From: Utricularia gibba
Taxonomy: Eukaryota; Plantae; Magnoliophyta
DNA length: 64,000 bases
Assembly (NCBI GenBank): GCA_002189035.1
Contig: NEEC01000015.1
Location: 744,001 to 808,000, forward strand
Direction: 5' to 3'
Shown: one piece after another, positions 17,870-45,413 of the stretch
How positions within the stretch are numbered: position 1 is the stretch's first letter
How the letters are laid out: every line of letters starts with the position of its first letter
Translations under genes and position numbers: made by a program
The notes under the pieces: generated by a model
The model's database searches: none
What the model was told of the DNA's origin: nothing
What the model saw: the letters and a program-made list of their open reading frames with translations, nothing else

Positions 17870-18990
17870 ATGGATTTTATTCTATAAATCAGTTAGCAAA
17901 CACGAAACACCTATGTTGAATATAAATCTAATTCAAGTTAGATCAACTCGGCCCACTTTAAGGCCCACTGTGCCAAACGAAAATCGAAATGCAAAGGCCC
18001 AACTCACACTACGTCTTAACAAATGGGCCACATCAGGTGAGAGCCCATATTTCAACGCCAGGCGGCAGCCCATGCGCAACTTGGTCGTGAGGAATTATGT
18101 AAGAATTAAGACGAAATATTATTTTAACAATTATATTTGCGTTTGACTCTTGTACATATAAAATATTATAAGTGTTTTTCATATATTAATTATTACATGT
18201 ATAATTTATGAAGTATATTTAAAAATGAAAACAAAGCGAAGTAAAAATTCAAACGGGTATTTATGAGTATATGCTATTTTTCGATGATTTAGAAAATCTG
18301 ATTATTTGTATTTTCGCTCTCACACATTAATACAAAAAAATTGTACTAAAATCATCATTTTCTCACATATATTTAACAGATGGTCAGATTTATAAATTAC
18401 TCATTCTTTTATTATTATATTCTTTCTCATATATTATATCAATAATTATTATTTTTGTCTTTTGCTTTTAGTATTTATATTTAGCAATCTTGTATTCTCT
18501 CAATTATTTGTCATTAATTAAAATTAAAAGAAAATCAATTTACCAAATTCTGATAATAATATTATCGAAAGCAACATTCATCCACTTATTTAAGCGACTT
18601 GACTCAAAGAATGATTAAAATTACCAATGCTCCAAAGCATATTGGAACTAATCGAATTACTCTGTTCCTCTTGTAGTAGCAATACAAGTGTAGATTATTC
18701 TCAAGTCCTTTGGACTCGGATGGAAGCATCAAAAAGGCATCATCATCCTCTTCTTAGGATGGATGATGGTCGACCTTCACATCATCTACAATTAGTTTAT
18801 CAAATTCGATATTATTATGACGAAATAATTTCAATTATCTCAATTTTTTTCAGGTATCCAGGAAACATTATTTGAGAATTGTTGTATATATTGTGCTTGT
18901 TGGGCTCTTGTTGGTCTTTATGAGGTGCTGGTGGTAGCTGTTTCAACATAATATTTTGTCTGAGCAATCCTCACAAATATTTTCAAAAAA
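17870..18990. repeat. Cassette copy A (3'-flank module) with a minus-strand SINA-RING exon-2 remnant at ~18900-18985
   Basis: Direct repeat of ~21420-22400, roughly 80% by eye (e.g. ggcccaactcacacta...gagcccatatttcaacgc; ataataatattatcgaaag..cattcatcc.cttatttaag). The minus strand reads ICEDCSDKILC* followed by cagcacctcata, as in other copies. Confidence 0.75.
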
Positions 18991-19883
18991 GAATTTTCTT
19001 AAATGCAAAACAAAACAAAATTATAGTACCGAAATTATTGGAGCCCTATGGGGCAATTGAACACCTCCATATTCACCCATTTGTATTCAGTCATTTTTAT
19101 GATGTAAGTTTTTTATTTCATCATCCATCTTCTTATATAGCGTTGGAGGAGCAGAATCTATGTGTTTTTAATGTTATGGATAAATATTATATTTTAGATT
19201 TATATTTTATGATAATATTTGTGTAGAATTTTGGTATTCTAAAAAAAATCATTAAAGTTCATGGTCCAAGTCCCAAAATGAGTGAAACCCATTTTCCAAA
19301 TATAGATCTTACGTAATTTGTATCTCTTTTGTGTGTGTGTGTTTTTTTTTTTTGTTAAATTCCCTTCTTTGGGGTGAGGAAGATTAAAATTCAAATATGG
19401 GATATCTAGGGATGAAAACTAAGCCCAAGTTCATGGGCCGGTCCGAGCCGGTTCTAGGAAGTATTGGGCTTAGACCTGATCCAAATTTCATTGGGCTTTT
19501 GGCCGAGACCGGCCCAAATTCCATCCATAGTGATATCATTCCGTACCCATCCCTTCACTGCCTTCCTTGCCCTTGAATATTCAAAATTGATATTGCAATA
19601 TTTTTCTAAATTTTTGTGCTATGTGGCAGTAAATTTTGTAATGTACACAATATTGATATTCATTTTTCAAAAATTGTTAGCACATCATAGTGAATTTTGT
19701 AATATGCCTGTTTAAAGTGTAATTACATGAATTTTTATAGAATTATTATCATATGACGGTGCATTTTGTATGTGCTGGAATTAAAGTGTAGCGTTGTTTG
19801 CAAATCACACCTTTTGGTAGTATAGATTTTGCTCCTCCACCACTATATAAGTTGGTGATGAAATCAAAACTTACATATTAAAA

Positions 19884-20168
19884 ATGCCCGAATACAAGTG
19901 GGTGAATATGGATGTCTTCAGCTGCCCTATCTGCCGAAGTGGCCCAATGAGGGCTCCTATCTTTACGGTAGTATTCTTTTTTTTTTTTTTTTTTGAAAAA
20001 TTCTTATTAAAAAACATGGATACTCATGCCCAGTGCAGCGAAGGCCACGTCGTCTGCAACGTGTGCGCATCAAAACTACATCGAAGACCACATCAAATCC
20101 AATTTCGGGTCAGGCTGGCCCATGCCACCTCCCGGATGCCACGTCAGATGAAACGAATGTTCAGTTAA
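19884..20168 (+). CDS. SINA-type RING micro-gene with truncated RING (72 aa; exons 19884-19967, 20034-20168)
   Basis: MPEYKWVNMDVFSCPICRSGPMRAPIFT|CSEGHVVCNVCASKL; the last CxxC pair is absent. Family TATA module at 19844-19850. Confidence 0.65.
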   Translation: MPEYKWVNMDVFSCPICRSGPMRAPIFTVVFFFFFFFEKFLLKNMDTHAQCSEGHVVCNVCASKLHRRPHQIQFRVRLAHATSRMPRQMKRMFS

Positions 20169-21289
20169 ATGCAAAGGCCCAGCCCGGTTCATAGAGATCG
20201 TAACAAATGGGCCAGGCCGTACGCACACCCAAATTCCAAAGCCAGATCCAATTCCATATTGCAGTCAACCAATAGGGATGAAAGTTGGGTCCTTACTCGC
20301 CACTTTGACCCTAATTCAAAAGACTTTCGCCAAGTTTCGGGTTTGGATCCGGCTGAAACCGAATTATATATAATAATGATTAATATGTTCTTAATTTGAT
20401 TATACAATGAGTTGGACTGGCCCAACGACATAAATTAATAAAACATTTTATAAAATTATTAAAACTAATATACAAATTAATATTATTTAAATAATTTATA
20501 GAAACTAATTTAACATTATTATATGATTCATTAATACGGTGCAAAACACTAACCAAATTTGGCCACACAAATCATTAGTGTTTCACGTATCTTAATTATT
20601 ACATGATATTACATGTATTATTTCACCTATATATTTAAATTCTTAAATAAAGAAGAGTAAAATTGCAAACAAGGGAATGCATCATTACTACGACACAATA
20701 TCTCTTATGTTACTTTCATCACAAATTAAATAGTTGGAGTTTGACGATGACATCTCAAGTTATAATCAACATAAAAAATTTAATTTTCAAGTTTCAAAAT
20801 TGCATTACACTTACTTTAACTCTTTTTTTTTTCAAACAGTTTGTCCATGAACATATAAAATTACGTATTTGACCTTCCATATTTCCAAAAGTTTGACCTC
20901 TAATATTATTATAACGGTATATCATTATAAATAATATCTACAAATATCATGATTATTACCCTTATGCTTTTACTCTTGTCAAACTTAAAAAATGACAATA
21001 CGCGAATGTGATATAATCCTAACAATGGATTTTTATTTGTCGAATTTCATATGTGAAAAACCTTATTATGAATTTTTTTAGATGTAAATCAAAAGGGGCT
21101 CATGCTTGGGTATTCTCTGAATTATTTTGAAAAATTAAAGTGTGTTTTTCGAAATTGTGAAACTTGGGGATTCCAATATTTATATTGATTGAAATTTAAA
21201 GTGTTGCTTTTGCACTTTTCACTAAATTTAAAATAAAGAAGATTATATGCTTTTGCTTATGTTATATGCATGACTCTATAACAGTGAAA

Positions 21290-22400
21290 TCCCAAATTGC
21301 AATGCTAGATCCAGTTCCAACTCGGCCCAGCTCATGCCCAACTCAATCGTGAGATGAAAATCATAGTACCAAATACTATTGTAACCATTCTAGAATTTAT
21401 GCAACACAATAACGCCATCCTTTAAATCAGTTAATAAACACGGAACACCTTAGTCGAATACAAATCCAATTCAAGTTTGATCAACCCAGCCCAATTTAAA
21501 CTCTATAACACGTTGCCCCTGCTTTGTATCAAATGAGACCCAAATACAATGGCCCAACTCACACTATACATCTTAAAAATGGGCTAACTCAGTTGCGAGC
21601 CCATATTTCAACGCAAGATCCAGTTCCAACTCGGCCCAGCTCATGCCCAACTCAGTCGTGAGGAATTACATAAGACCAAATATTATTTTAACGATTTTAT
21701 TTTCGTTTGACTGCTTTACATATAAAATATTATAAGTATTTCTCATATGTTAATTATTACATGTATAATTTATGAAATATATTTAAAAATTTAAAACAAA
21801 GCAGAGTAAAAATTCCAACGAGTATTTTATGATTACACATTATTTTTTCGGTGTTTTAGAAATATGATTATTTGGATTTTATTTCTCACACATGAATAAA
21901 AAAAAATTACATTAAATGTCCAATTTTCGCACACATATTATAGTTGGTCAGATTTATAAACATCTCATTCTTTTAATATTATATTTGTAATTCTTTTTTT
22001 TTTTTGTACTTTTGCTTCTGGTAGTTATATTTCGCAATCATATATTCTCTCAAGTATATTTCATTAATTAAAATTAAAAAAAAATCAATTTACAAACTTC
22101 TAATAATAATATTATCGAAAGAAACATTCATCCGCTTATTTAAGGGACTTGAGTGATAGGATGATTAAAATCACTCATGTTCCAAAGCACATTGGAACTA
22201 ATTGAATTACTTTGTTACTCTTGTAGTAGCAATGCAACGTCCTTTGGACCCAGAGGGAAGCAGAAAAATGCATCATCTATAATCAATTTATATTGATATT
22301 ATTATGATGAATTAATTTCAATTATCTCAATTTATGTGAGAAATGAATTTTCAGGTATATTATTATTATGCAATCCTGGAACAATCAATGTTATGGATAA
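21290..22400. repeat. Cassette copy B (3'-flank module)
   Basis: Homologous to 17870-18900 and to 23330-24000; gatccagttccaactcggcccagctcatgcccaactca occurs twice within it. Confidence 0.75.
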
Positions 22401-22469
22401 ATATTCATAGTTTACGGTTTCAGTCACATGCTCCAGGTTCCGGGTCGCACCAGAGTCGTGTCGACAAAG

Positions 22470-22855
22470 TGGGCACCTCAGAAATTTGTGTGAGCATACA
22501 ACGTGTCCTTCGTACACTGGGCACGAGTATCCATATTTTTAAATAAGAATTGGTGTTTAATACAAAACAAAACAAAAATATAGTAGCGAAATTAATTCTT
22601 GTACTTCTTGTGAGGCCCTGGCAGCAGCATAGGGGACAGTTGAATACCTTTGTATCGCAACAGAGATTGATGAATACAGAGGTGTTCAACTGCCCTATTT
22701 GCTGCTGCCAGGGCCTTACAAGAAGTACAAGAATTGATTTCGCAACTGTATAGTTTATTTTGGGTTTAACAAAATTCTTATTTAAAAATACGGATACTTG
22801 TGTCCACTGTACGGAGGATCACGTTGTCTGTACACAAAAATTATTGAGATGCCAA
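22470..22855. pseudogene. Head-to-head pair of SINA-RING pseudogenes forming a tight inverted repeat
   Basis: The minus copy reads KVFNCPLCCCQG..; its exon 2 has a frameshift (CT-EGHVVCSHKFLRCPLC). The plus copy reads MNTEVFNCPICCCQG..; its acceptor is mutated to CAC. Loop ~26 nt. Confidence 0.8.
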
Positions 22856-22894
22856 CACAAATTAAATTAGATTAATATCTGTTGTTTATTCAAA

Positions 22895-23310
22895 AAAATG
22901 AATGCTACATATTATATATATCTTTATCACCTCCCCCACTCTCTCTCTTACTTTTATCAAATATTGATAAAAATATATTAATTAAATAATATGTAAAAAA
23001 GTAATACCTTCATATCAAGTTCAAATAAATTAAATTTATTTTATCATAATCTCATTAGCTAAAAACTCTTGGAACTTAAATATGTATTGTAAGTGTGGGA
23101 TTGGCCAGGCCAGCCTGACCTGAAATTGGATTTGAATCCAAGAGTTTTTAGTTAATGACATTGAACTTAAATAAAATTAATGTGAAGGTATTAATTGTTT
23201 ACGTATTCTTTAATTAATAGAATTTTTATCAATATTTGATGAAGTAAGAGAGAGAGATAGAGAGAGTAGGGGAGATGATAAAAATATATATAATATTTAG
23301 TATTCAATTT
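22895..23310. mobile_element. Fold-back MITE-like element with long TIRs
   Basis: ttatcacctccccactctctctcttacttttatcaaatattgataaaa pairs with ttttatcaatatttgatgaagtaagagagagag..gtaggggagatgataa, and gctaaaaactcttgga pairs with tccaagagtttttagt. No coding capacity. Confidence 0.65.
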
Positions 23311-24035
23311 TGTAATAAAAGACCAGTTGGGCTTTAAACTCTACAACGCCATCCCCCTGGACTGTGCCCAATGAAAATAATCCCCGTTATATATGAAGAC
23401 CGGACTCAACACATAAGCATCTTGACAAACGGGGCGGGTCAGTGCAAACCCAAATTGCAGCGCCAGATCCAGTTAACTCGGCCCAGCCCATGCCCGAGTT
23501 CGACTGTTGCACAAATAAAATACCTTTAGAATTTATGCAAAATAATTACATCCATAATGCTGATATATTATAAATATTTTTCATATATTAATTAATTATG
23601 AAATATATTTACGGATTTATAAAAAATAAAAATAAAAAGTCAACTGGATATTTACGATTAGCTATGCTTTTGCATTTAGTGATTACAATTCGTAACTCTA
23701 TATTCTTTCTATTACATATGTTTTTTGTCATTAATTGAAATTAAAAGAAAATCAATTACCAAATTTGATAATAATATTATTGAAAGAGATATTCATCCAT
23801 TTATTTAAATGAATTTGTTCCTCTTGTAAATTCACAATCCTTTTGTACTCGGTGGGCAGCACCAAGGGCATCATCATCGTTTCTACCATGGCATCATCTG
23901 CAGTCACTTTACAGAGTTTGATATTATTATGGTGAAGTAATTTCAATTATCTCAATTTATAATAGAAATGAATTTCCAGGTATATTATTATCATCATTTG
24001 AACATTATGAGTGTTAATCAGGTGAATACTTTTTG

Positions 24036-24276
24036 TGAGCACTGCATACAGACTACCCGTCCTTCGATACACGTCCACGAGTATAGATATTTCTCAATGA
24101 GAATCTTAATTAATACGAAACAAAATAAATGATACTTTTTACGGAAATGATGGTGGCCAACCATTTGTGTAATATATTTTTGTTTTGTATATAATAAATT
24201 CTCATATAAAAATATCAATACTTGTTGGGGTGTATCGTGGGACGCGTAGTATGTATGCAATGCTTGCTCACAAAAG
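24036..24276. pseudogene. Degenerate inverted pair of SINA-RING exon-2 remnants
   Basis: The minus strand reads CIEGRVVCMQCSQKVFT*; the plus strand at ~24228-24276, gtgtatcgtgggacgcgtagtatgtatgcaatgcttgctcacaaaagg, is its homolog. Confidence 0.65.
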
Positions 24277-25644
24277 GTAATTTAATTTTGTTTTGTATAT
24301 AATAAATTCTTATATAAAAATATTAATACATACTGTTTTTTGTTTAATATACAAACAAATTAAAATATTTAGTGTTATAAATGATCAAATGACAATGTAG
24401 TATTTGGGGTGTGAAAAATTGATTTAATGTGCAAGATAGAAAAATACGATTATCTGATATGTAAATGATTTGATTTATCTTAATTTTATTTTTTCATTTA
24501 AATAAATTGAATAGATTCTTTACATCAAATTAAATTGTTAATATTTTTACATATTATCTAAAAACTATTTTCATTAATTAATAAAATTCAGAATATGATA
24601 TTTGATTTTAATTAAATCTTTATCCTATCTACATATATATTATTTAGACTATCATATCTAAAATATGCCCCCAATATGGTTTTAGTTCAATAAATGTGAT
24701 ATATATTACTTATTCTAGAGTTTGTATTATCACAAAGAAAGTCCACTCTTGGCCTCCTGAATAACAATTCAATTCTATCCGATAACATTGAAAGAGATGA
24801 AGCCATGTTTGTATATGGGGTACAAAAAGGGGGTCATGGTCTGTGAGATCTGTTCGCTCAAATTATCAAGATCCCCAACCTAATTGTCTATCATTATTGA
24901 TACTAAGATCGGACGTGTATTGCCCATTATACCCTTTATTGCATCAAAACCCTAAGGCAATTTTATTTATTTAATCGAAGTAGAAGGATTTTTTTGTCTT
25001 ATTATTATAAACAGAGATTAATGTTACATTATCTTAGTGGGGTTCTTCTTCCAGTGTAGATTGAGGGCATAGTGGGCATCTTCTGTGTAAATTAATATCT
25101 TTATTCTAAATATATAAGTTTAGATAATTATTTTACTTTTTATAAATAGGTTCAACCCAAAACAAAATTGAATCAAACAACCAACTGAGCCGGTTTTAAA
25201 GACACCGCCGTAGGTCTACTTTAAAATTGCATAGAGTCGTTCCCCATAGCACACGCAAAGCCCACATTAATACCCATCTTAAAATTCAAATGCAGAATGG
25301 TATCTCCTAATATGTTAGATTTTTATAATCAACGAACAACTCTTTTTATTTACTGTCATAAAGTTGCACATATAAAATAAAGTATAAATTACATCAATAA
25401 TGTATATATATTATCATTGTTTGTAATGCATAATAATTATTATGCTGAATTAAAGTAAAATTACAAAGTACGTATTACAATTTTTTCTAGAATTATTAGC
25501 ACAACATTATGAGTTCTGTAATATGAATGATTAAATTGTAATGTTGTTCAAAAAGCATTAACTTTTCATAATATAGATTTTGCAACTCCAACACTATATA
25601 AGAAGCTAGGGTGATGCGAATTGCAATTAAACCTTGTATCATAA

Positions 25645-25875
25645 ATGGCGGAAAATGAAAGCTATATTATGACGGGAGAATTATTCAACTGCCCGATTTG
25701 ATGCGAGGGCCCCATGAGGGAGGCCATCTTCTCGTTAAGAGATTTATATTTTTTATTTAGCACAATTATGAACTAATAATTTTTATTTTGAAAGTGTGGC
25801 GAGAGCTACATACTATGTGATGCCTCCTCACTCTCGCAGTTAGACCTCAAAGTAATAATGTATGGATATTATTGA
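25645..25875 (+). pseudogene. SINA-RING micro-gene pseudogene with intact TATA promoter module
   Basis: MAENESYIMTGELFNCPI*CEGPMREAIFS, with TGA at 25699-25701 and the donor mutated to TT; exon 2 reads CGESYILCDASS.. TATATAA at 25595-25601. Confidence 0.8.
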
Positions 25876-25891
25876 AATCTTAGAGAACAAA

Positions 25892-26229
25892 ATCACGGAA
25901 TTCAAGACAACGGCAGTGATGAGGTGGCCCTAGGACAACAACATGGTACAATGGAAACCTATTTTAAAGTGATGCAGGGTAGAACTAACTTAGCTGGAGA
26001 GTATTCTGTAGGCTACGGAACACAACCACTTGGAAGGTCCAAGCATCCGAATCAATACCAGGTAAGGCGGCGTTTTGAGGACCTTCCAGGTGCTCGTATT
26101 CCGTACCCTACAGAATACTCTCCAGCTCAGTTTGTTCGACCTCACATAACTTCAAAATAGGTTTCCATTGTACTAGGTTGTTGTTGCTATGGCCACCTCA
26201 CCAGTGCCGTCGTCTTGAATTCCATGATT
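25892..26229 (+). ncRNA. Candidate hairpin RNA / MIRNA-like precursor (arms ~150 bp, loop 26041-26078)
   Basis: Imperfect inverted repeat with perfect 20- and 21-bp blocks (gtacaatggaaacctatttt/aaaataggtttccattgtac; agctggagagtattctgtagg/cctacagaatactctccagct). The repeat is directly visible; its expression is inferred only. Confidence 0.5.
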
Positions 26230-26231
26230 CT

Positions 26232-26802
26232 TGATGAGATCATGGATGCTACTGATTATTCCAATGAAGACAAAGGACACAAGATCAATAATTTTCCATT
26301 GATTTCAGTTGGGCCAATCAATAGATCAAGAGCAAGAAGGAATCAAGAAGTGCTTAAGACCTTATGGGCCAATCACCCAAGCTATGAGATTTTTGGGATG
26401 GAATTCAACATTATCAAAGTGGATCAACTTGATTAGAGAAGGCCTATTACGACCAAATACATTATTATGACTACTTTGCCTCCAATAAGGCCCAATCCTT
26501 CAACTATATAAGAAGGGCCTTACTCTTGTTTTGGACAACTTTAATTGTAATCACTTTTGAGAGCAAATTCTCCTTCCTTGAGTTCTTGTACAACTTAGAC
26601 TTATCAAGCCTTGCTTGTGGTGTCTAGTGTGTGGTTTATCACTCCCAATTTCTTCCTTAATTCTGTGAGTGTGGTACAATTTCATAGTTTGGGTTGCAAG
26701 GATCTTTCAATCCTTGAGGGCCAACTTCTTTTTCTTGACGGATTGTTTCTTTTCAACCAAGATCTGGTTTGCCAATCACTTGTTGATTGGAGGGTCGTAT
26801 CA
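26232..26802 (+). repeat. 5' LTR (571 bp)
   Basis: Starts TGATGAG, ends TATCA and is followed by GG plus the PBS. The first 409 bp match 32166-32574 with 8 substitutions counted by eye. Confidence 0.92.
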
Positions 26803-27513
26803 GGTGGTATCAGAGCCAATCTTTCTCTTCTTCATCTCTTATTTATCTTGTTTTTGTTTCGTTCTTAGAAAGAAAAAAAAAACCAGAAACTAGTCCAGAT
26901 CTATATTGATTTGGTTATCTTGTCTTTTGCTCATCTCTTCTTCTGAAAAGAAGAACCAAGGGGGGTTTCTTATCTTTGTTTCTTCCATCCTTTTCTTCTG
27001 GATTGCTGCAAAAAAAAAAAAAAACGTGTTGAAGGGAGAAAGAAAGTTAGTAGCTGAATTTTCAACTTTTCACACATAAGAAAAGTCAAAAAAAGAAGTT
27101 AGTCATTTGAATCCATTGAATCTTCTCTTTACCAAAAAAAAAGAAAAGTCAATATTGTACAACTTTGTCTATTGTCCTACTTCTATTTCATTTTAACTCT
27201 TTTCAATTGTCTACCTACCTCTTTTGGTGTTAATCACAAAAAGTTACACTCTATCTTTCCATTCCTACTCTTACTTAACCATTATTACTATTACCATCAC
27301 CAAGTCTTATATTGTTCGCTTTCTTTATCCCATTCATTACTCTAGCCACCCTTATCTCTTTAAACCACACTTAGATGGATTTTTTAAGGTTTATTGAGTC
27401 TTAAAGTTCAAGAGGACTTGAGGTTTGGAAATTCTTTCTTTCTTCATTTACTTCTATCTTTCTGTCGTTGTACTCTTTCCTTCTTTTTGTCTACACTTTT
27501 CTCTTGTAGTAGG

Positions 27514-30500
27514 ATGTCGAGCTCTAATAACCCTGCAGAAGAATCAAATGTTATGGATGTTCGTTTCGTACTTAATGCAATGCAAAGTGAGTTCAGGAGA
27601 TTACAAAGATGCATGGAACAAATCCACGTCAAACTAGAGTACCATGATGAATCTCTCAAGAACATCAAAAAGCAAGAAGAGGACAGTGTCTTCCATGGAA
27701 GAACAAGAGTTCCAACACACCATAGCAGAAGGAATTCTCAACAAGAAAAAGATTTGGAATCTGAGGCTGAAGAGGCAAAGCATGGTGAACAAAGGAGAAA
27801 CAATGACAACATCCCTGATGAGTATGATTCATCTAGTGGTGATGATACAGAACGAAGATCTCAAAGAAATTGGAGGCCAAATCGTGGTGTGAGATATGAT
27901 GAAAGACCCAGGGGTAGACACACACGTGAATACAAGGAATTTGATAACATCAAGATGAAAATCCCTTCTTTTCAAGGGAAAAACGATCCAAATGCCTACT
28001 TGGAATGGGAGACTCGTGTGGAGCATGTGTTTGATTGTCACAACTATTCTGCAGTCAAGAAGATCAAGCTTGCTGTTGTTGAGTTTACAGATTATGCCAT
28101 AACTTGGTGGGATAAAGTAGTACTCAACAGAAGACGAAATGATGAAGAACCAATTCGCACTTGGGCTGAAATGAAGAGGATCATGAGAAAAAGGTTCATT
28201 CCCAGCCATTACCAAAGAGATCAACACCAAAACTTGCAGAAGCTCACCCAAGGGAGCAAAACCGTGGAAGAATATTGGAAAAAAATGGAGGTGTTAATGA
28301 TTCGAGCCAATATAATAGAGGATAGGGAAGCTACAATAGCAAGATTCCTCTATGGTTTAAACAAGAAAATCTCTCAAGTGGTCCAGTTGCAACACTATGT
28401 GGAGATTGAAGACATGTTGCATGTTGCAATAAAGATTGAGAAGCAACTAAAGTCTAAGGGACAACATAGAGACCATCCAAAACCTTCTACCTCGTGGAAT
28501 GTTGCTGGAAGTAAGGAGAAGAAACCAAATTATCTTTCATTTGGGAAATCAACCAAGTTTGGACCGATGAAAGAGGGCACTTCAGATACTCGAAACCAGG
28601 AAAGAGTATTTAAGTCTTCTGGACCAACACGAAATATCAAGTGTTTCAAATGTCTTGGCCATGGTCATATTGCTTCGGAATGCCCAAACAAGAGGACCAT
28701 GATTCTAAGGGACTCTGGAGACGTTGAATCTGATGTTGAGTGTGAAAGTAGAAGTGAAGTACAGGAGATAGATGATGGGGAACAACAACCTGTCATTGGT
28801 GAAAGTTTGGTAACAAGAAGGACTTTAGCCATGGATGCTAAGCCAATGGAGGAGGAACGAGAAAACTTATTCCATACACGTTGCTTTGTGAATGGGAAAG
28901 TTTGTAGCCTAATAATCGATGGAGGCAGTTGCGCAAGCGTTGCTAGTGTTCTCATGGTGGATAAACTTCATCTTCCTACTCTTAAACATCCAAATCCCTA
29001 CAGGCTTCAATGGTTGAACGAAGGGAGCGAAATAAAGATCACTAAACAAGTTCTTGTTGCTTTTCAAATTGGAAAGTATCAGGATGAGGTTCTTTGTGAT
29101 GTAGTGCCCATGCATGCTGGACACATACTCTTGGGAAGGCCGTGGCAATACGATAGGAAGGTGATCCATGATGGCTATACTAACAAGTATTCCTTTTCTA
29201 TGAAAGGAAAACAAATCACATTGGTGCCTTTATCTCCAAAAGAGGCACACGAGGATCAAGTTAAGATTGCTACTGCTATCAAATCCTTTGGTGATTCGAG
29301 GAATGAGAGCTTGGGAGAGAAAAAAGAGATATCACGAGAAAGAAAAAGAACACCTAAAAAAGAGAGTGAAAAGAAAGACGTGAATGAAGGAGTTGTGAGG
29401 AAAAAAGAAGTGGAATGCCTTGTTGCAAGAATGAGTGATGTGAAAAGAGTGTTACATGCCAGAAATCCCTTTCTTTTGCTCTTGTTTAAAGAGACTTTGT
29501 CACACAACTCTAACTCACAAGAGGATCTTCCTACTTGCATTAAACTTGTTTTGCAGGAATTCAATGATGTTTTTCCTGAAGAATTGTCTGGATTACCACC
29601 ATACCGAGGAATAGAACATCAAATTGATTTCGTTCCTGGTGCTCAAATCCCAAACTGAGCTGCATATAGAGCTAACCCTGAAGAAACCAAAGAAATCCAA
29701 CGCCAAGTAGAGGAACTCATGGCTAAGGGGTTGGTGAGGGAAAGTGTGAGTCCATGCTCAGTTCCATTATTATTGGTGCCAAAACATGATGTAACATGGA
29801 GAATGTGCACTGATTGTCGAGCCATCAACCAAATAACGGTTAAGTACAGTCATCCTATACCTAGACTTGATGATATGTTAGATGAATTACATGGATCATG
29901 CATTTTCTCTAAGATCGATTTGCGTAGTGGATATCATCAAATTAGGATGAGAAAGGGGGATGAATGGAAATCTGCTTTCAAAACTAAGTTTGGTTTATAT
30001 GAATGGTTGGTTATGTCTTTTGGATTGACTAACGCACCTAGTACTTTTATGAGGTTAATGAATCATGTATTGCGTCCCTTTCTTGGTAGATTTGTTGTTG
30101 TTTACTTTGATGATATTCTTGTGTATAGTAAGACACTGGATGAACATACATGTCATTTACGTGAGGTGTTGTTCGTCTTGAGAAAAGAGTGTTTATATGC
30201 TAATATCAAAAAATGCGACTTTTGCACAAACAAAATCTCTTTTCTTGGCTATATTGTAAGTGATTTAGGAATTTTAGTAGATGAAGACAAGGTGAAAGCA
30301 ATTAGAGAATGGCCAACCCCTACCACAGTTGGAGAAGTGCGCAGTTTCCATGGATTGGCTAGCTTCTACCGTCGTTTTGTCAAGGATTTCAGCACAATTG
30401 CTGCACCATTGAACGAGGTTGTGAAGAAAAATGTTCAATTTTGGTGGGGAGAATCACAAGAACATGCTTTCAAGACACGTAAGGATAAGCTTAGCTCAGC

Positions 30501-32370: not shown

Positions 32371-32574
32371 AGAAGGCCTATTACGACCAAATACATTATT
32401 ATGACTACTTTGCCTCCAATAAGGCCCAATCCTTCAACTATATAAGAAGGGTCTTACTCTTGTTTTGGACAACTTTAATTGTAATCACTTTTGAGAACAA
32501 ATTCTCCTTCCTTGAGTTCTTGTACAACTTAGACTTATCAAGCCTTGCTTGTGGTGTCTAGTGTATGGTTTATC
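32166..32574 (+). repeat. 3' LTR, lacking the distal 162 bp
   Basis: The match to the 5' LTR stops abruptly after ggtttatc (5' LTR position 26640). Confidence 0.9.
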
Positions 32575-35084: not shown

Positions 35085-35546
35085 AATTAATCTAATGATA
35101 TGTTATTCAACACGCCTGGAGGAGGAGGACGACGAAGAGGGTCTTCCTCGAAAGTGGGCGACTGGATGAGCTGCCGAGACCTACAGCAAATCGGGCCTCC
35201 GCAGAAGGGACATAGTGACAATCGTTTTTTTTTTCAAATACAATTCATGCAAGTAAAAAAAACAAAAAACTACTGAATAAATTAGACCCGTCATGGACCC
35301 ATTGTAGATGATAATAGTGCCCTTGTATGCTACTATGGGTCTCGAATTTATTCAGAAAGTATTTTTTTTTTTACGTAATATGAATTTTATTTGGAAAGTC
35401 CTGTGTACTGTCACTATGCCCGGTTCTGGCGAGGCCGCCCGATTTACTTGGACACGGAGCGGGTCATCCAACGTCAACCGCTTTGGAGGAAGACCTCCTC
35501 GTCGTTCCCCTCCTCCAGACGTGTTGAATAAACAATTAGATTAATT
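35085..35546. repeat. SINA-RING-derived inverted repeat (hairpin E1)
   Basis: Arms share tgtcactatg.cc..ttctg..gaggcc, gaggaagacc, cctccag.cgtgttgaataa and attagattaatt. The left arm on the minus strand encodes CPFCGGPICCRSRQL. Confidence 0.8.
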
Positions 35547-35701
35547 CTTGTATGATTACTATATGTATTTTATCTGACCGCGTAAGTTAAACACAATAAT
35601 TTTCAATTTCTTTTTCTTTCATCAATTAGTATTATAAAATTATAATAATTTCCATGTAATAATTATTAATCTTGTTTTTGTTTATTAGGACGGCCCCGAG
35701 G

Positions 35702-35950
35702 CGCCTTTGTCTGTCCTCTATGATGTGCTCCATGTCACGGCACCTACAAGACAGTGGCCCACAACATTGTGGGCATCTTTCAAGTTTGTGGCCTTCCGCA
35801 CACTTCCACAAACATACATATTCTTTCTGGAAGTGTCCGGAAGCCCACATTGTGTGTGACGCCACAAACTGGAAAGATACCCACACTGTTGTGGGCTACT
35901 GTACTGCACGTGCCGCCACGTAGAGCACCTCATACAGGACAGGCAGACGG
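35702..35950. repeat. SINA-RING exon-2-derived inverted repeat (hairpin E2), loop 19 nt
   Basis: The minus arm reads CAEGHKLERCPQCCGPLSCRCRDMEH; the plus arm reads CPEAHIVCDA..KLERYPHCCGLLYCTCRHVEH (frameshifted). Confidence 0.8.
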
Positions 35951-36879: not shown

Positions 36880-37700
36880 TTTAAACCGACCTAATCAGTA
36901 AAATTAATGTTTATGATTATTTATATACTACCTTTTCTGATATTGTTCCTTTTGTATTATAAAAATATTTTTTTGATATTTTTACAGTCAAATATTCTCT
37001 GGATTTTCAATTGAATGCAAAAGATGATTCATTTACCTAACTTTGAGAATAGTATTTTAGAAAGAAGAATTCATCTACTTATTTAAGATATTCGTTTCAT
37101 AATATAATGCATGTCAATCTATCAAATGTCCTTGCGGATCATCCTCTTTCAAGGGTTGGCATCATCTTCTTTCAATTAGCTGAATTTCTGGTGGAGATTA
37201 ACGGTTATTATGCAAGAATGTGCCATTATTGTGCATTTTATTATGATAATTTCTTGATTCAACTAAATGACTCTAATAACATGATAAAATGCAAACAGTA
37301 ATTAATCTAATAAATAGGTTATTCAAATCGGGCGGGCCCGGGAGAAGGGGCATGGAGCGGGGTTTTTTTTAAAAAAAATATCCACTATGTTTTGATTATA
37401 TTAGAAATTTAACTATTCTACGTGTATTTTTTTGTGCTTAATGTATGAAAGAAATGAACAGTGAGTATTTTTTAAAAACACCCATGGAGCGGGTCATCCC
37501 AGTCAACCCCTTCCCAGGAAGACTTTTCTCATATTCCTCCTCCTCCATCAGATTAATTTTTGCATAATTAATTACTCAATTAGTATAAAAAATGATCACA
37601 CAAATATTAACCTTACCGCCTAAGTTAAAACATAATTTTCAATTTCTTTTTCTTTCTTCAATTAGTATTTTAAAATTATAAGAATTTCCATAATCCCTCA
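36880..37700. repeat. Cassette copy F, a paralog of 34770-35680 with the hairpin core lost
   Basis: Shares gtcaaatattctct, attttagaaagaa.aattcatctacttatttaaga, ggagcgggtcatcc..gtcaacc and taagttaaa..ataattttcaatttctttttctttc with the E unit. Confidence 0.7.
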
Positions 37701-37894
37701 CACAATCCAATCAAAAATGATACTTTATACCATCCTATTTGTTGCCCATTCTACCCTCCATGAAAACCCTATTGCATCATATCTGAATGGGTATCATTCT
37801 CATCCGGTTTATACGGATTTATGTTATGATAATTAACTAATTTTATTTACCACTGAAAATTAAATTCTCAGGTATATTATTTTACAAATACGAC

Positions 37895-38278
37895 TTAATC
37901 ATTCTTTTGTTTGTCGGTGTCGGGGACTGGGGGAGGAGCCGGATCTCCATCTCCATCTCCCTCGAGAATAGACCGAAATATCTTTTCCAGGTCTGAACAC
38001 CTGCAACAGATTGGTCCCTTACAGATTGGGCATTCCGCCAATTTGTGGAAGCATGGCTCACACACAATAATCTCTCCTTCTCCGCACTGCATTCAATTTA
38101 TTTTTTTTCTTAAAAATAAATATTGGTAATTAAAACAACAAATAAAATAAAACCAAAAAAAGGTTACCGAGAAGATGGGCCCTCTGATGGGGCCGACACC
38201 GCACGCCGAGCAATTAAAGAGGTGGGCAGGGACATAACATAGCTTCTTTTTCTCCATCTTGTTCATACGAGTTTTCAT
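37895..38278 (-). CDS. SINA-type RING micro-gene, intact ORF (up to 100 aa; exons 38278-38168, 38086-37895), His ligand replaced
   Basis: ..LFNCSACGVGPIRGPIFS|CGEGEIIVCEPCFHKLAECPICKGPICCRCSDLEKIF..; GT-AG intron of 81 bp; family TATA module at ~38294-38300. Confidence 0.7.
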
Positions 38279-39702
38279 TTCACCAACAACTTATTATATA
38301 TCGATGGAGGACCAAAATCTATGTTACGAAAATATGTGATTTACGGACAGGATTACGCTTTAATTAAGAACGCGCTATCATATTATAATAATTCTCGAAA
38401 ATGACATTGCGATATTAACGGTGCGTATTGTAAAGTCAGGGGTCTGATTATGATATACTACATTAATTACAGATGAAGGAATTGATGTGGTTAAATAGAG
38501 AGATATTTTGAATCTTTTACTAAGGACTTTTTCTTAAAAAATAATAACGTACAACTATAAAGATTTGATTTTTGAATTAAATAATATCATATAAAATAAG
38601 TATGAATCATTATGTTGATATCAGACTAAAATCTGGGTGTGTATCAATAGTGGGACAACAGAGAGAATTAAGTCTATGAGTATATTTCAATTATCACACA
38701 TTGATTATAGATCGGTACGTGATTAATGAGTAAAAATTTTACTAATCTTATATGAGACATTTTCTAAAAAAGATAAAAAAAAACGTAAAATCATGAGGGT
38801 TGAATGGTCAATACACATAATATTGTGAAAAGTAATTGTAGTTGGTGACATGCATGGTGCAATATGTATCAATTTTGATTATTGGAGGGCAAAGACCCCC
38901 ACCCCCTATTCCTTACCTCGGGCGAAGGCCCATAAAGAGGAGCCGGTCCAGGAAACGTATGGGCTTGTTCCATGGTGAACCCATTCCCCGGCCCAAAGCT
39001 TGAGATGAGACACCTCTTTGTAGAATAGAATGCATGATAATTTTTTTTATAATTTTTTAGAAATGTATTTAAAATTATAACATGGAAAGAGAATTAATGC
39101 AGCTCATGTCCCGATTATGCAATTTAAACAACAACCATTTTTATGTATTAAAAAATAATCATTATTGATTTTTCAGAATTGTACAAAAGGTAGTCCTAAC
39201 TGCCACGAACAAATCCGTACGGGTAAAAACCTAAAACAGCGGCCTGTCGCCCCCCGGATTCGCATTCTGGGGATGGACGAAGATGCCACCCCACCCACCC
39301 AAGAAACGACACCGTTTCTGGAAGCATCGATGGCGGAGGACGACGACACTGTTGGTTACAGTTCATTTACCCATGATATGATGATTCTTCGGCAAATGGT
39401 TTGGCGTATTTGTGTAATTAAGAAGATGTTGGGAGGGTAATTCCTTGAGGAAGTTCCGAATTCCCCTGCAACTTGCGCACCCCACTTGCTCGAAACCGCC
39501 TGACAATGGAAAAGCGAGGGCGAGAAACGCAGAAAAATCTTCATGATGTTTGCTCTGCAACTATTCGGAGATATTTTCTCTTCTGCCGGTTCGTATACTT
39601 TGTCTGTTCTTCGTGAATCGCTCATAGGATTCATCGACTGTTTTCTTGTAGACGCTTTTCCCCAGGTTCCTCGGCCACAAATAAAGAAGAAGAAGCATAA
39701 GA

Positions 39703-40376
39703 ATGCCGTCTTCTCTGCAGATTCAGAGGATTAGCTCCAGGAGCCCTCGCTTCACGGACCGCCTGGATCTCATGTGGGTTTCTCCGATTTCCCCTGAAAT
39801 TCCCCTGCCGGATGATGTTCGCCGCCGTCACACTCACCTGGTACTGTCTGATTTCGTTTTGATTGATTTCCGCCTCATACGGGTAACCCTTTCTTAATCA
39901 TGTGCCGTTTCTAGGTAATGGAAAACCAGTGCTGCTCCGCGGTGGTGCAGGCGATCGATGCCCCTATCGAGATCGTGTGGTCCTTGGTGCGACGATTCGA
40001 CAACCCACAAGCGTACAAGCATTTTCTCAAAAGTTGCCGAGTGGTTCACGGCGGCGGGGAGGTGGGTACTGTAAGGGAGGTGACGGTCGTCTCCGGGTTG
40101 CCGGCGGGGAGGAGCACGGAGAAGCTGGAGATTCTGGATGATGAGAAGCATGTGATGAGTTTCAGAGTCGTCGGCGGCGATCACCGTCTCCGGAACTACC
40201 GGTCCATCACGACACTCCATGCGGCGGGAGCGGCCGCGACGGTGGTGGTGGAGTCGTATGAGGTGGATGTGCCGGAAGGGAATACGGTAGAGGAGACTCG
40301 TGCCTTTGCGGATACGATCGTGAGATGCAATTTGCAGTCGCTTGCTCAGATCTCTAGAAGTTTGCTCACAAATTGA
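39703..40376 (+). CDS. PYL6: ABA receptor of the PYL4/5/6 clade, 199 aa (exons 39703-39840, 39915-40376)
   Basis: [10 protein letters not shown]...[11 protein letters not shown]|[12 protein letters not shown], gate SGLPA, latch HRL and CNLQSLA. The PYL6 label comes from remembered synteny; the clade assignment is firmer than the ortholog call. Confidence 0.9.
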
Positions 40377-41289
40377 ATTTTCAATATATATATATTTTTT
40401 TGCCAGGCTGTTTAATCCTCATTATCGCATTAAATAGCCGCTTAATACTTCAAAAACAAAAAAAACTAAAAGCATTTTCCTTTCTAATTAAAGGCATTAT
40501 GTTAATAAAAAAAATTTTATTATCTAAATTCTTTCTTCAAAATGAGAAGTATTTTTGTTGAGGAGGCAAATGCCCAACAGTCATCATAAAGCCTTCCATC
40601 AAAATGGACCAGGTCGCAAATTAGGGTAAAGCCCAGTTCGAACAAGTACGAATATTTATACGTTTTTTATATTATATATAAAATAACCATTATCAGATCA
40701 AAATGGGCTGGGCCACCGATGAAAAAGAGTGATCAGCGTGGCCCAATACGCAAATTTTCAATTTCTGTTTTTTCGGTAAATTATTATTATAATTTGATAT
40801 CAATTTGGATCGATTCCGGCAACAATACAATGAAAAAAGCATTAGTGCAACTTGTTTTAGTATGATTTTCTTGGTTAAATTCATGAATTTTTTTATAATG
40901 AATTAAAAAAATATAAATCTTATATTTAATTAATTTTTTTATAATGAAATACAATTTGCTTCTCAACAATAAAAATGAAATAATGTTTGAGAAGAAACTT
41001 GTAGTAATGAGTTTCTGGTTTTCTTTAAAAAAAAAACTAAAATATTAATTATAATAATTCAAAAATAAAGAATAAATTGTGGTTTTTATTTATTTTGTAG
41101 GCAACCCTTGTGCTGGGCACAGAAAACACAACCTACCATCAATGTTTTTTAAAGCAACTATGTAAATGGGGCCGTGAGAATCAAAAAATGCACCAAGTAT
41201 TAACTATTGCCAATACCTAGCTGCCACTAACACGTACGTACGGGTAAAACACAGGTTCGGGTCGGGTCGGCCGACATCTCAGGTTCCGC

Positions 41290-41664
41290 CGCCGTGCGTT
41301 CTCGCAGGAGTGAGCAACCAGTCATGAGAATAAGCTCTAGAACAAGGCGTCACCTTAAAAAAAAACATCGCTACCATAAATCTCATCAGGCAAAGATATA
41401 TCAGGAGGATATTCTTTCTTCTTGCGTATTGCCATCTCTTTTCCTAGTTCCTCCTCCAATTCGAAATCTCCGGCGACCCCGTTCAACAGCATCTCCAACT
41501 TTCTCCTGCTCAACGATTGAGAAGACCAAGGAGCCATCAAATCTCCAGCTCTTTTCCCCTTCGAATACAAAACATCATCATTACCGACGATGACCATGAA
41601 CCGCCGCCGTCGACGCAGTGAAGGGGGGTGGCGCCGCCGGAGCCGGAAGCTCTGTTGACATCAA
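41290..41664 (-). pseudogene. Deleted and frameshifted fragment of the neighbouring TZF gene
   Basis: Collinear with 46370-46822 (cagtcatgagaataagctctagaacaaggc; gagccatcaaatctccagctcttttcccctt; gccggaagctct.ttgacatcaa), with several internal deletions. Confidence 0.88.
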
Positions 41665-42461
41665 TAATATATATTAATTATTATTTATTTGTCATGTGTG
41701 GTTACAAATTCTGACTCAAAGTAGGTTGAAAATTCAAATGTGTATTCATGACTACATATTATTATTATTTTTTACTTGTAGTCTATGAATTTGGAGACAG
41801 CAAAGTGGAAGCGATGTAACGTTCATTATAATTGATTCGATATTCGAAAACGTAAAAAAAAATTAATATAATGATATGTATATTATTAGAATTAAATAAA
41901 AAAATTCATATTAGATTCAGGAAAAGAAATATATTATTTAATAGATAATATCACGCTTAGAAGCATTTTAAAGGAGACCAAAAGTGGAGACCATTATGGA
42001 TTAAGAAGATTTGTAACATCATAATTATTTATTGCATGTATTTTCCATGCAAAAGAATCGATTTTATTGAAATTTGGATAATAATATTGTGGTGAGAAGG
42101 ATTCATCCCCTTATTTAAGTGACTTAGCGCAAGGCATTATGGGAATTAAGAATGCACTAGAATACCATCCAGTTTGTGTCTTCTTGGGATTATTCTCAAT
42201 TCTTCTTAACACCATCCTCCTTCCAAAGGCAGGCAAGTAGATGGAGGTTCATGACGGATGATCAATTTTCTAAATGACGCTATATCATTCTCACTCAATT
42301 TTACAAAGTAGTACTATTCATTCATTCATTTTTTCTTTATTGATAAAAATATTAATTTTTTGTTGGTTTGGTGTTATTTGAAAAGCATAGGTTGGGTGTA
42401 GAAGCAATATTTGGTTCTTGTATATATTATCAAGTACACACAAATATTTGTACAATTTTTA

Positions 42462-42813
42462 CTAATCTTGTTTCTCTTTGTGGGCAGCTGGAGGACGAGA
42501 CCGCGACGTCGCCTTGGGTTCGAAGCGCGTCGTTTGGAAAAGCGCTTCGAAATGCCTGCATCTACAGCAGACGTCCTCTCCGCAGAAGGGGCATCTCCCT
42601 AACTTCTGCGAACACGGCCCACACAGAATGTGGCCGTTCATGCACTGCCAAAAAAAAAAAAAAATTAAGAACACATACACTTGATTTAATAGAAACACAG
42701 CAAAACAAACCCAAAAAACTTACGGAAAAGATGGCCCCTCTGATGGGGCCGTCACAGCAGATCGGGCAGTTGTACATCTTCATGTCAGCCTCGATTAATT
42801 TGTATTCAGCCAT
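42462..42813 (-). CDS. SINA-type RING micro-gene, intact 90 aa (exons 42813-42724, 42644-42462)
   Basis: MAEYKLIEADMKMYNCPICCDGPIRGAIFS|CMNGHILCGPCSQKLGRCPFCGEDVCCRCRHFE..KQD*; complete C3HC4 with the SINA CxNGH signature. Confidence 0.75.
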
Positions 42814-42930
42814 TTACTCTCTGGTACAGTGTTAAATTTCATCAATTACTTCATTTAATATTATTATACTTTAAATTGTTTCAAGTATGAAGAATTAGGC
42901 TACATGAAAATTAACGTGATTTGGAGGGAA

Positions 42931-42950
42931 TATGTATGTATGTATGTATA

Positions 42951-42986
<36 letters not shown>

Positions 42987-43004
42987 TGTATGTATGTATG
43001 TATG
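42931..43004. repeat. (TATG)n/(TA)n microsatellite in the palindrome spacer
   Basis: Direct reading of the sequence. Confidence 0.95.
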
Positions 43005-43317
43005 TACATGCACTTCTACACCCATCACATCACCTCATTCATGATCCTCGAATAATCAAATCGCAAATTGCATGTTACATATTTTTCTTGAATTATTATC
43101 AGAATTTTGAAATTTCCAGAAAATTGATTTTGCAAATATTTCTAAGTCATTATCAATTTTTCTAGAATTATTATAATCTCAGGTGAATTTTGTAATATGT
43201 GTAATTAAAGTGCAATGTTGTTAAAAAGCACGACTTTTTCATACTATAGATCTTACTTCTACAACTCTATATAATAAACAAGCTGGTGATGAAATTTAAC
43301 ACTGTACCAGAGAGTAA

Positions 43318-43669
43318 ATGGCTGAATACAAATTAATCGAGGCTGACATGAAGATGTACAACTGCCCGATCTGCTGTGACGGCCCCATCAGAGGGGCCAT
43401 CTTTTCCGTAAGTTTTTTGGGTTTGTTTTGCTGTGTTTCTATTAAATCAAGTGTATGTGTTCTTAATTTTTTTTTTTTTTTGGCAGTGCATGAACGGCCA
43501 CATTCTGTGTGGGCCGTGTTCGCAGAAGTTAGGGAGATGCCCCTTCTGCGGAGAGGACGTCTGCTGTAGATGCAGGCATTTCGAAGCGCTTTTCCAAACG
43601 ACGCGCTTCGAACCCAAGGCGACGTCGCGGTCTCGTCCTCCAGCTGCCCACAAAGAGAAGCAAGATTAA
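43318..43669 (+). CDS. SINA-type RING micro-gene, intact 90 aa (exons 43318-43407, 43487-43669)
   Basis: Protein identical to the 42813-42462 copy; GT-AG intron of 79 bp; family TATA at 43268-43274. Confidence 0.8.
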
Positions 43670-45413
43670 ATATTGTATAATTATACAAAATAATTTATTA
43701 TACTTTATTGTAAAGAAGGTGAATTAGCGATGGTGTTAAGAATTAAGGAGCCCCAGCCCATCACAATTTTCAATTTCTGTTTTATCGGGAAATTAATATT
43801 ATAAATTGATATCAATTAAATCAATCCAACGAAAACCAGAAAGATGAATAACACAATCCACTCAATCCTGGCCCTCCATTACCGCGAGATGTTTCCCTCA
43901 ATGAAAATCCTAGTGCAACTATACCTACTTCATGTGAGTCCAAGGCCTCGACGAGTGTTTTAAAATAATGGGTTTTTTTTTATGAATTCAATTTAACAAT
44001 TTTTATATAAATCGAAAAATTATTTAAAAAAATTAAAAATATTACATTTAATTAATCTTATAATTTGCTTCACCACAATTATTTCGTCTTGTTATGAAAA
44101 TATGAAATATGAATAAAAGGAAATAGTTGGCGAAAAGAAAATTGTTCTAATCAGATTCTGTGAGCAATATTTTAAAAACGTGTTCAATTCATGATTTGAA
44201 TTAGTGATCCCTACGGTTAAATTGGATTCCTTAATTTTTTATTATATACAATAAAAATAATTGTTTAGACAAACCGTTATTTTAAAATATGGACGGCTGT
44301 AGTCGTTAACTTTCTAGTCATAGAATGGTAGTGGATCATTGATACGAACCCAATTTCACGTTCGGCCCGATCCACCTAAAGAAGGCCCACCGTAAAATCC
44401 ATAGAGCCGTTGGATGACGTAATTATGGGATGAGCCCTTCCTTTGCATAAACCCCGTCTGCCACTTGAATACGGATTGATGTACGTGCATAGTCGATACT
44501 TGTGATTAGAACACGCAAAAACAAATTCAAAAATTTTGGTGAACTGAAAATCCCAAGGAAAATTGAGAATACTCAGATATGCCAAATAAATTGATCTAAT
44601 TAAAAATGAATGAACAAATGTAACAAACATCAATATAACAATATTATTCATTTTAGATATTTAATTTTCATTGTTTTATATTTGGTATTTTCAATTTTCA
44701 TCCTCAAATTACTCTAGATTAAATATATTTAATTTTGAAATTCCTATCAATAACTTTTCACCATACTCAGAAAATAGATCTCTGCATAGTCATTTTATTC
44801 AATTTTATCATTTCTCATACATGAATTCACTTAGACCATCCTTTCTCGTGCAGGGCATCGGATTCGAAGCATGAATGATTGAGGCCTAGTTCGATATTTC
44901 TATAAATAAGTTTAAACAATGTAGAACCAAAATTAGTTTTTTTATTAAATAATAAATCTCACATTCTAATAAATCATGGAGAGGAGGAAGCTTCCAACTG
45001 CCAATTCATGGGATAACCCTAATAATGTACACGTGTTTAGTATTAGGATGGCAGGCTGGACCCCACCTAAGTAAACATGTCGACACATTAGATGACATTA
45101 AAATCTAATTAAAAAGTGAGAATTAATTAGTATTTAAGTGTAATTATTATAGATGAGAAGATAATAGTGAGAAAATAAGGAATATGAATAAATGGAATAA
45201 TTTTTTAAAAGAAGATTTTAGTAATCGAATTTATATCGTGGCTGCTTTCTAAAAACAATAATTCAATGAGAAAAAATAAATCAGCTTGGAGGTGGCGCGG
45301 CCGGTTAGTTCCCGGGATGACGGCGGAGGCCATGATGATCTGCTTACGCGGCTGCTTCCGCCGCTCTATTTACATTTCTCGACGTGCCACCATGTTATCA
45401 AGGGGGGTCTCCT

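Follow-up and report, generated by a model that had tools for sequence, protein, structure and literature searches.

Fold-backs that arise by inverted duplication of a gene are an accepted source of young plant microRNA genes (MIRNA) and hairpin RNA (hpRNA) loci (PMC1790633, PMC3237417). Here we consider an array of small genes encoding a SINA-type RING domain, which lies within a 64,000-nt stretch of Utricularia gibba DNA (GenBank assembly GCA_002189035.1, contig NEEC01000015.1, positions 744,001 to 808,000 of the forward strand). This whole stretch, hereafter the window, is plant nuclear DNA, and all coordinates below refer to it. An original prediction made from the sequence proposed that the array may be a nursery of hairpin RNAs repressing their parent genes and recognized no described system like it. 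That last statement was too strong, given that gene-derived inverted duplications are already known as candidate hpRNA and MIRNA loci in the two reports cited above. At a probability of roughly 60%, our reading is instead that a palindromic gene unit was amplified in tandem and that the array has since been decaying, under the influence of conversion between arms and of deletions at the pair centers.

The inverted-duplication model of MIRNA origin reportedly goes back to Allen et al. in 2004, with MIR161 and MIR163 as young loci. The RING array resembles loci of this type in that its arms derive from a gene and lie beside members of the same family, and in its long imperfect stems. It differs in that its pairs stand head to head with promoters deleted, in having no near-perfect 21-mer to the intact local copies, and in comprising six pairs in one tandem array rather than a single locus, with arms about 80 to 86% identical that are old, not nascent. 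The array is, moreover, described here at the level of DNA structure. The gene palindromes of the human Y chromosome, for their part, are said by Rozen et al. in 2003 to be kept alike by arm-to-arm gene conversion. One pair of the array, P43 (copies c16 and c17), is like them in its near-identical arms, each with an intact gene, placed with sharp edges around a unique spacer, and the older RING pairs are like them in private changes common to both arms. However, the RING array is about 1000-fold smaller (arms of 0.1 to 0.4 kb), consists mostly of pseudogenes, and has its conversion deduced. Both structural kinds, fold-backs from inverted duplication and gene palindromes homogenized by conversion, are already known, and the array has the structural features of each.

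Copies were located by tblastn, with the two exons as query, and by an iterated nhmmer profile in which the ATG falls at about position 69, exon 1 at 69 to 158, the intron at 159 to 234, and exon 2 at 235 to 420. This gave 16 fragments of one two-exon gene coding for a Sina_RING domain only, where about a dozen intact, broken, or remnant copies had been counted before. All of them lie within 17.9 to 43.7 kb, an AT-rich interval with a GC fraction of 0.29 to 0.33, versus about 0.37 to 0.49 in the flanking genic DNA. A complete C3HC4 RING is found only in c16 and c17, which are mutually identical; the remaining copies are broken or, in the case of c15, degenerate. As predicted, most copies (12 of the 16) belong to divergent inverted pairs, which number six, all head to head: two are spaced, and four are tight palindromes.

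The first of the spaced pairs, P19, consists of c01 (19153-18975, minus strand) and c02 (19829-20070, plus strand), with arms at 18977-19161 and 19822-20017 that are 82% identical. Both copies are broken. The left arm, c01, keeps a TATA box, an exon 1 with an internal deletion, and the intron; the right arm, c02, has an intact TATA box and exon 1, with exon 2 cut at profile position 268, so that the last CPxC of the RING is gone. The spacer of this pair had been put at about 900 bp, and we measure 660 nt between the arms and about 790 nt from ATG to ATG. The other spaced pair, P43, joins c16 (42861-42442, minus strand; arm 42463-42844) as its left arm, with a complete 90-amino-acid RING open reading frame (ORF), to c17 (43254-43698, plus strand; arm 43287-43668) as its right arm, with a complete C3HC4 Sina-type RING. 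Here the predicted spacer of about 440 bp agrees with the 442 nt found (42845-43286). The arms are identical at 381 of 382 positions, and identity falls to the random level right at the inner edge and within about 20 nt of the outer edge, with weak residual similarity some 20 to 40 nt beyond the latter. Within the spacer lie a (TATG)n microsatellite of about 19 copies (42931-43006) and, in the right part, the conserved promoter of c17.

Among the tight palindromes, P22.66 (22469-22856, centered near 22662, loop of 5 to 18 nt) is formed by c03 (22658-22447, minus strand) and c04 (22665-22853, plus strand), and each arm spans exon 1 without its 5′ part, the intron, and part of exon 2. Its fold comprises 168 pairs with a longest uninterrupted helix of 44 bp, at a minimum free energy (MFE) of −219.6 kcal/mol and a z score of −49. 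P24.15 (24027-24279) is made of c05 (24157-24027, minus strand) and c06 (24155-24278, plus strand), with profile positions of about 138 to 274 in each arm; the spacer of about 55 bp assigned to this site was not reproduced, the loop measuring 3 to 5 nt with a poorly matched center. P35.3 (35061-35573, 513 nt, centered near 35317; c10, 35220-35069, minus strand, and c11, 35413-35573, plus strand) holds the 3′ part of exon 2 and 3′ flank. P35.82 (35645-35945, palindrome proper 35708-35945; c12, 35819-35645, minus strand, and c13, 35816-35931, plus strand) has a 19-nt loop. Folded as single strands, these four form 87 to 188 pairs across the center, closed by apical loops of 3 to 20 nt, with MFEs of −100 to −233 kcal/mol and z scores of −10.8 to −49.4 against shuffles, far beyond chance. 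In the tight palindromes the two arms break at near-equal profile positions (87/75, 137/138, and 214/213), so that both copies are without promoter and 5′ end.

The arrangement of the flanks shows how these pairs relate to one another. By iterated nhmmer, a flank module of about 1.1 kb is present in seven copies, all on the plus strand, as expected from the repeated flank modules first reported: U1 (17882-18974, the reference, 81 to 85% identical to the U3 copy), U2 (20075-20688, partial), U3 (21419-22344), U4 (23346-23970), U5 (34612-34949, partial), U6 (36928-37116, partial), and U7 (42049-42212, partial). The modules are 82 to 85% identical to one another. Breakage-fusion-bridge amplification is ruled out by their constant orientation. 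Separately, a module piece of about 80 nt (module positions 806 to 883) lies inverted outside the array, at 13819-13900 on the minus strand, at the 3′ end of a long ORF (13813-14997).

Most units run from the module through a minus-strand copy to a plus-strand copy, and with all modules on the plus strand, the locus is thus a tandem array of module, minus copy, and plus copy. The six pairs keep this order relative to the module. The plus copies of U1, U3, and U4 have similar outer ends (profile positions 268, 285, and 274) but different inner ends (1, 75 to 85, and 138), and the outer ends adjoin the following module, directly in U1 and after the inserted P23.1 palindrome in U3. In addition, the spacers of U1 and U7 are homologous in their right part (19727-19850 to 43152-43274), which is promoter sequence also conserved upstream of c15. 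Constant order and orientation, shared outer ends, and homologous spacers together imply that the pair predates the tandem duplication. Given that and the differing inner ends, the best reading is that the tight palindromes began as spaced pairs and lost the center later. The idea that spacer deletion turns a divergent pair into a fold-back is therefore supported as far as structure goes, by the shared outer ends and the homologous spacers; the regulatory role attached to it is not supported.

We imagine an ancestral unit made up of a flank module of about 1 kb, a minus copy, a spacer with both promoters, and a plus copy truncated in exon 2, the gene itself being a truncated SINA-type gene with a RING and a short proline-rich tail. 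This unit would have been amplified at least seven times. In four units, deletions around the axis may then have reduced the pair to a tight palindrome by taking out the spacer together with the two promoters and the 5′ ends of the genes, and U2 (about 20.07 to 21.4 kb) seems to have lost its pair altogether. Exchange between arms, by gene conversion or re-copying, would make each arm resemble its partner more than the arms of other pairs, with the 382-nt near-identical tract of c16 and c17 as the most recent such event. Point mutations, truncations, and the insertion of a long terminal repeat (LTR) retrotransposon would have killed most copies. The hairpins would then be structural by-products of palindrome instability, which, given transcription from an outside promoter, would suit Dicer well as substrates. 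We infer the order of these events, as well as the mechanisms of deletion and conversion.

One can also envision palindromes that needed neither an ancestral pair nor a central deletion, each arising independently when a break in a single minus copy left an end that folded back and copied its own strand. Such snap-back repair would explain why the arms of each palindrome are mutually nearest and share private indels, why the loops measure just 3 to 20 nt and the arms are short (120 to 250 nt), and why gene-unrelated palindromes occur in the interval. Independent copying would not, however, end the plus arms of U1, U3, and U4 repeatedly at a common outer position by the following module, and the homologous promoter sequence in the U1 and U7 spacers indicates that spaced pairs existed. 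The order of minus then plus copy relative to the module, kept in six of six pairs, likewise speaks against it, and we regard this origin as unlikely.

Central deletion in an ancestral pair leaves the likeness of the arms to be accounted for by exchange. In gapped global alignments, the arms of P19, P22.66, P24.15, P35.3, and P35.82 are 80 to 84% identical and those of P43 99.7%. Arm identity had been described as running from about 100% to roughly 75%; instead of such a gradient, we find a bimodal distribution, 99.7% versus 80 to 86%. The nearest relative of every arm is its own partner, and private indels are common to both arms in c03/c04 and in c05/c06. Arm divergence equals module divergence and is roughly tenfold that of the LTRs of the retrotransposon within the array, implying that the palindromes are old; judged by divergence, they are probably several-fold older than the retrotransposon insertion. 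The sequence of P43 suggests that arm exchange is still ongoing or was very recent.

Arms identical at 381 of 382 positions with sharp edges might also come from a mis-join, and the inverted copies, above all c16 and c17, could be suspected of being assembly artefacts. The sequence is present in DNA runs from 2013 and in a 2016 plant metagenome. The available support from DNA runs is contig-level word sharing, 0.76 in the best run, which says nothing on the P43 junctions. All other palindromes, however, have an arm divergence of 14 to 20% with indels, which no assembler creates. The concern over artefacts, already voiced in the original prediction, is thereby settled for the older palindromes, which are real, whereas P43 is known from the assembly only. 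As for P43, c17 shares homologous upstream flanks with c02 and c15, and the flanks of c16 are distinct sequence. The 2016 plant metagenome, a DNA run whose label gives another type of sample, shares most words of the stretch, implying much of the spacer, although the best-matching DNA run may be the assembly's source sample. Taken together, a mis-join seems barely credible.

Two further palindromes of the interval, with arms 83 to 86% identical, are unrelated to the gene. P23.1 (22885-23319) is a 435-nt AT-rich palindrome (GC fraction 0.24) that is inserted precisely where c04 gives way to the U4 flank module, a place at which U1 has no such sequence. P26.06 (25891-26229) is 339 nt long, with arms 86% identical and an MFE of about −209 kcal/mol; it lies about 300 nt downstream of the TATA box of c07, and the 5′ LTR of the retrotransposon starts 2 to 3 nt past its end. 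That these two are diverged RING-gene arms was considered and rejected, as no similarity of either to the gene or to its flanking sequence was detectable. Their presence points to a mutational cause of palindromes rather than selection for RING-targeting RNAs. The size and shape of P23.1, fully palindromic and placed exactly at a unit boundary, are those of a miniature inverted-repeat transposable element (MITE), which raises the question of whether the palindromes in general are fold-back or MITE-like elements or whether the unit is a gene-capturing transposon carrying RING exons. Against such an origin, no palindrome, P23.1 and P26.06 included, has a second copy within the 64 kb, no target-site duplication was seen at either of these two, and the gene-derived palindromes are homologous to local neighbors in register with the array, not to dispersed copies. 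We consider a transposon origin very improbable.

What the array encodes is best seen in c17, the only copy to combine a conserved TATA promoter, a GT-AG intron, and a complete RING. Its TATA box lies about 45 nt upstream of the ATG, followed by exon 1 (43318-43407), the intron (43408-43483), and exon 2 (43484-43669). The arm of c16 begins 31 nt upstream of the ATG, and the conserved promoter of the family is missing there. The spliced c17 product of 90 amino acids matches Pfam PF21362 (Sina_RING) at 31.5 bits (E value of 2e-7), above the cut-off of 29.3 bits, and its nearest relative of solved structure is the SIAH1 RING (E value of 1.4e-4). In both c16 and c17, the ligands are spaced C-x2-C-x10-C-x3-H-x2-C-x2-C-x6-C-x2-C, which matches the SIAH1 RING. 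The two copies thus resemble the SINA/SIAH RING E3 ubiquitin ligases in their Sina-type C3HC4 RING, its SIAH1-like spacing, and the start of the linker, but differ from them in having no SINA/TRAF-like substrate-binding domain; for the SINA zinc-finger or TRAF-like domain, Pfam gave no family beyond the RING matches. The c17 ORF ends 38 codons past the last RING cysteine, within a proline-rich tail. This stop position is common to c15, c17, and c11, from which it follows that the local family descends from the truncated form.

The unpaired copy c15 (38315-37861, minus strand) has a conserved promoter and an open two-exon ORF of 93 amino acids. Its RING is degenerate, with the zinc-binding His changed to Glu and one residue inserted, and scores 18.7 bits for Sina_RING, below the 29.3-bit cut-off. 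Compared with c17, its exons are 56 to 60% conserved and its intron 57%, so the exons are no better kept than the intron. The RING family is either fast evolving under partial constraint or recently freed from constraint.

Relatives of the micro-protein were also sought outside the window. A word-indexed search, whose query had a surplus Gln where the exons join, returned nothing. With exon 2 as query, an exhaustive HMMER search found 13 matches, all to generic or repeated RING proteins and none close, and a metagenome scan gave two marine contigs with merely a 22-residue RING match. Exact products of the c17 read-through ORF, the retrotransposon pol ORF, and two neighboring genes described below (the PYL ORF and the CCCH gene) were not on record.

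Could the hairpins act through RNA? On the nursery reading, the fold-backs would be transcribed and diced into small RNAs, which would hold down the RING micro-genes or else further genes of the SINA family; as the original prediction has it, the locus may then encode proteins and their repressors alike. Long stable hairpins are present, as in the 168 pairs and 44-bp helix of P22.66, and arms that stem from a protein-coding gene are what the inverted-duplication model calls for (PMC1790633, PMC3237417). P43 would give a 382-bp near-perfect duplex matching two intact genes, and conserved cysteines amid fast-changing sequence are a pattern known from gene families under conflict. The arms, however, are already 14 to 20% diverged and all of similar age, which is not a maturing series. 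The head-to-head promoters point outward and are deleted in all four tight hairpins, so that a hairpin transcript needs an outside promoter. The one hairpin close behind a retained TATA box is P26.06, unrelated to the gene, which follows the TATA box of c07 at a distance of about 300 nt; it is the only hairpin of the interval with a plausible promoter.

The RNA evidence at hand consists of assembled contigs from four small runs of three studies, of unspecified tissue; it covers 37801-43800 and is blind to small RNAs. RNA runs share 6 to 19% of the words of this region, these four being among them. Contig depth was zero on c15, c16, the P43 spacer, and c17 in all four runs, and all contigs fell on a PYL4-like gene at 39170-40376. 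This zero depth over P43 and c15 counts against the nursery reading, although a lack of contigs is no proof that transcripts are absent, and the silence of c16 and c17 in RNA sequencing would also fit self-silencing. Comparison of hairpin 21-mers, on either strand, with the c15 and c17 mRNAs found none with two or fewer mismatches. Three 21-mers from tight hairpins match c17 and one matches c15 with three mismatches; at up to four mismatches, there are 14 for c17 and 2 for c15, versus shuffled means of 2.9 and 0.75. The 21-mers of the P43 stem match c16 and c17 trivially.

Searches against Rfam 15 gave no family at the gathering threshold, the best scores being 26 to 47.5 bits against thresholds of 49 to 100. 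These subthreshold matches were nearly all to animal families and fell on microsatellite or on hairpin tips. Those to animal mir-297 and mir-1277 are explained by the (TATG)n microsatellite at 42931-43006. We also considered C-to-T hypermutation or CpG loss as a footprint of long-term RNA-directed methylation and rejected it, since the transition/transversion ratio between arms (0.5 to 1.3) is not above that of the flank modules; there is no strong CpG depletion in most palindromes and no transition excess between arms.

With no RNA contigs on P43 or c15, no 21-mer at two or fewer mismatches, and no Rfam family, repression of the intact copies by hairpin small RNAs is unsupported, which is not to say refuted. 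A regulatory hpRNA or MIRNA role of the array is likewise unsupported, and present-day targeting of the intact copies by the hairpins is unlikely. Given also the tight hairpins without a promoter of their own and the gene-unrelated palindromes alongside, we find it distinctly improbable that the locus is a nursery of hpRNAs or proto-MIRNAs.

A more elaborate version would be a self-regulating conflict system, in which an amplified, fast-evolving RING-only gene is checked by hairpin RNAs from its own collapsed copies, with P43 as the current silencer and the older palindromes spent. The RING-only gene might in that case be an E2-binding decoy of SINA ligases, perhaps in reproductive cells only. 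In Arabidopsis Ws, the PAI1-PAI4 inverted repeat is said by Bender and Fink in 1995 and Melquist and Bender in 2003 to be tail to tail and transcribed through both arms from an upstream promoter. By analogy, it would be the nearest precedent for a possible action of P43, as an inverted gene duplication able to silence its family via double-stranded RNA; P43 differs in being head to head, and no read-through transcript appears in the four RNA runs. In Drosophila, hpRNA loci (e.g., Nmy and Tmy against Dox) reportedly suppress amplified young gene families. The likeness to the RING array, a fast-evolving amplified small gene near hairpins of its own sequence, is an analogy only, the array being known from sequence. 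Our literature search on SINA-derived hairpins found nothing relevant. Small-RNA data for U. gibba have been published (PMC8333044), with a ShortStack table given in unitig coordinates. We see the conflict system as a long shot, and overall there is a small chance of a real hairpin-RNA system of one kind or the other.

Several points weigh against a decaying array shaped by conversion and central deletion. The central deletions need to have been nearly symmetrical in four units, leaving loops of 3 to 20 nt. Such symmetry is expected for hairpin-guided slippage or fold-back repair, and the symmetric end points would accordingly go back to a hairpin-guided deletion or to fold-back repair. The plus copies of different units are merely 66 to 70% alike, below what shared ancestry would lead one to expect, so that later conversion from the minus arms is required. 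The RNA evidence is confined to 37801-43800, outside the tight hairpins, and to four small contig-level runs. Finally, c15 retains an open frame and seven of eight zinc ligands despite exon conservation at the level of the intron. Selection may thus still act on some of the family, at least, and "decaying" may not fit every copy.

The remaining copies are unpaired. Of these, c07 (25580-25831, plus strand) has a TATA box, an exon 1 with an in-frame stop, the intron, and the start of exon 2; c08 (32642-32567, minus strand; feature 32575-32642) is a 5′ remnant with TATA box, 5′ untranslated region (UTR), and ATG, cut off at an LTR; and c09 (34157-34086, minus strand) is a 5′ flank remnant. The element that interrupts the array between c07 and c08 is an LTR retrotransposon (26232-32574, plus strand) with two long open gag-pol frames (754 and 883 amino acids) and LTRs of 409 bp that are 98% identical. 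The flanking 5 nt on either side of it do not match, giving no target-site duplication. A simple insertion into c08 was rejected on this ground and because c08 does not resume on the left side of the element. The flanks of the retrotransposon are not contiguous parts of one copy of the RING gene, which suggests that a rearrangement may have followed the insertion.

The PYL4-like gene (39170-40376, plus strand), which encodes a putative abscisic acid receptor, lies between c15 and c16 and is transcribed in four of four RNA runs. Its coding sequence of 199 amino acids (39703-39839 and 39914-40376) is divided by a GT-AG intron of 74 nt, which all four runs show spliced; left unspliced, the frame meets a stop. 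PYL4-clade genes are usually intronless, and this intron looks like a gained or intronized segment. A second intron, of 63 nt, lies in the 5′ UTR (39588-39650); run X8 retains it, and X9 and X12 show it spliced out. The best matches of the gene are at most 80% identical and come from many eudicot orders, mostly asterids (Solanaceae and Lamiales). Between the PYL gene and unit U7, about 350 nt (41318-41664) form a partial duplicate, 80 to 88% identical and in the same orientation, of positions 46410-46822 in an ankyrin/CCCH zinc-finger gene (45414-47147).

For now, the array counts as a well-documented candidate and not as a regulatory system. Should its structural interpretation prove right, it would provide a compact natural series of the evolution of an inverted gene pair, with spaced pairs, a freshly homogenized pair, four collapsed palindromes, and one unit with its pair lost, all in one 26-kb array. 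Within a small plant genome, it would then be useful for studying how palindromes become unstable and how their arms convert each other. Were small RNAs to be found, the locus would be a rare case in which several stages of hairpin birth from one family stand beside the surviving genes.

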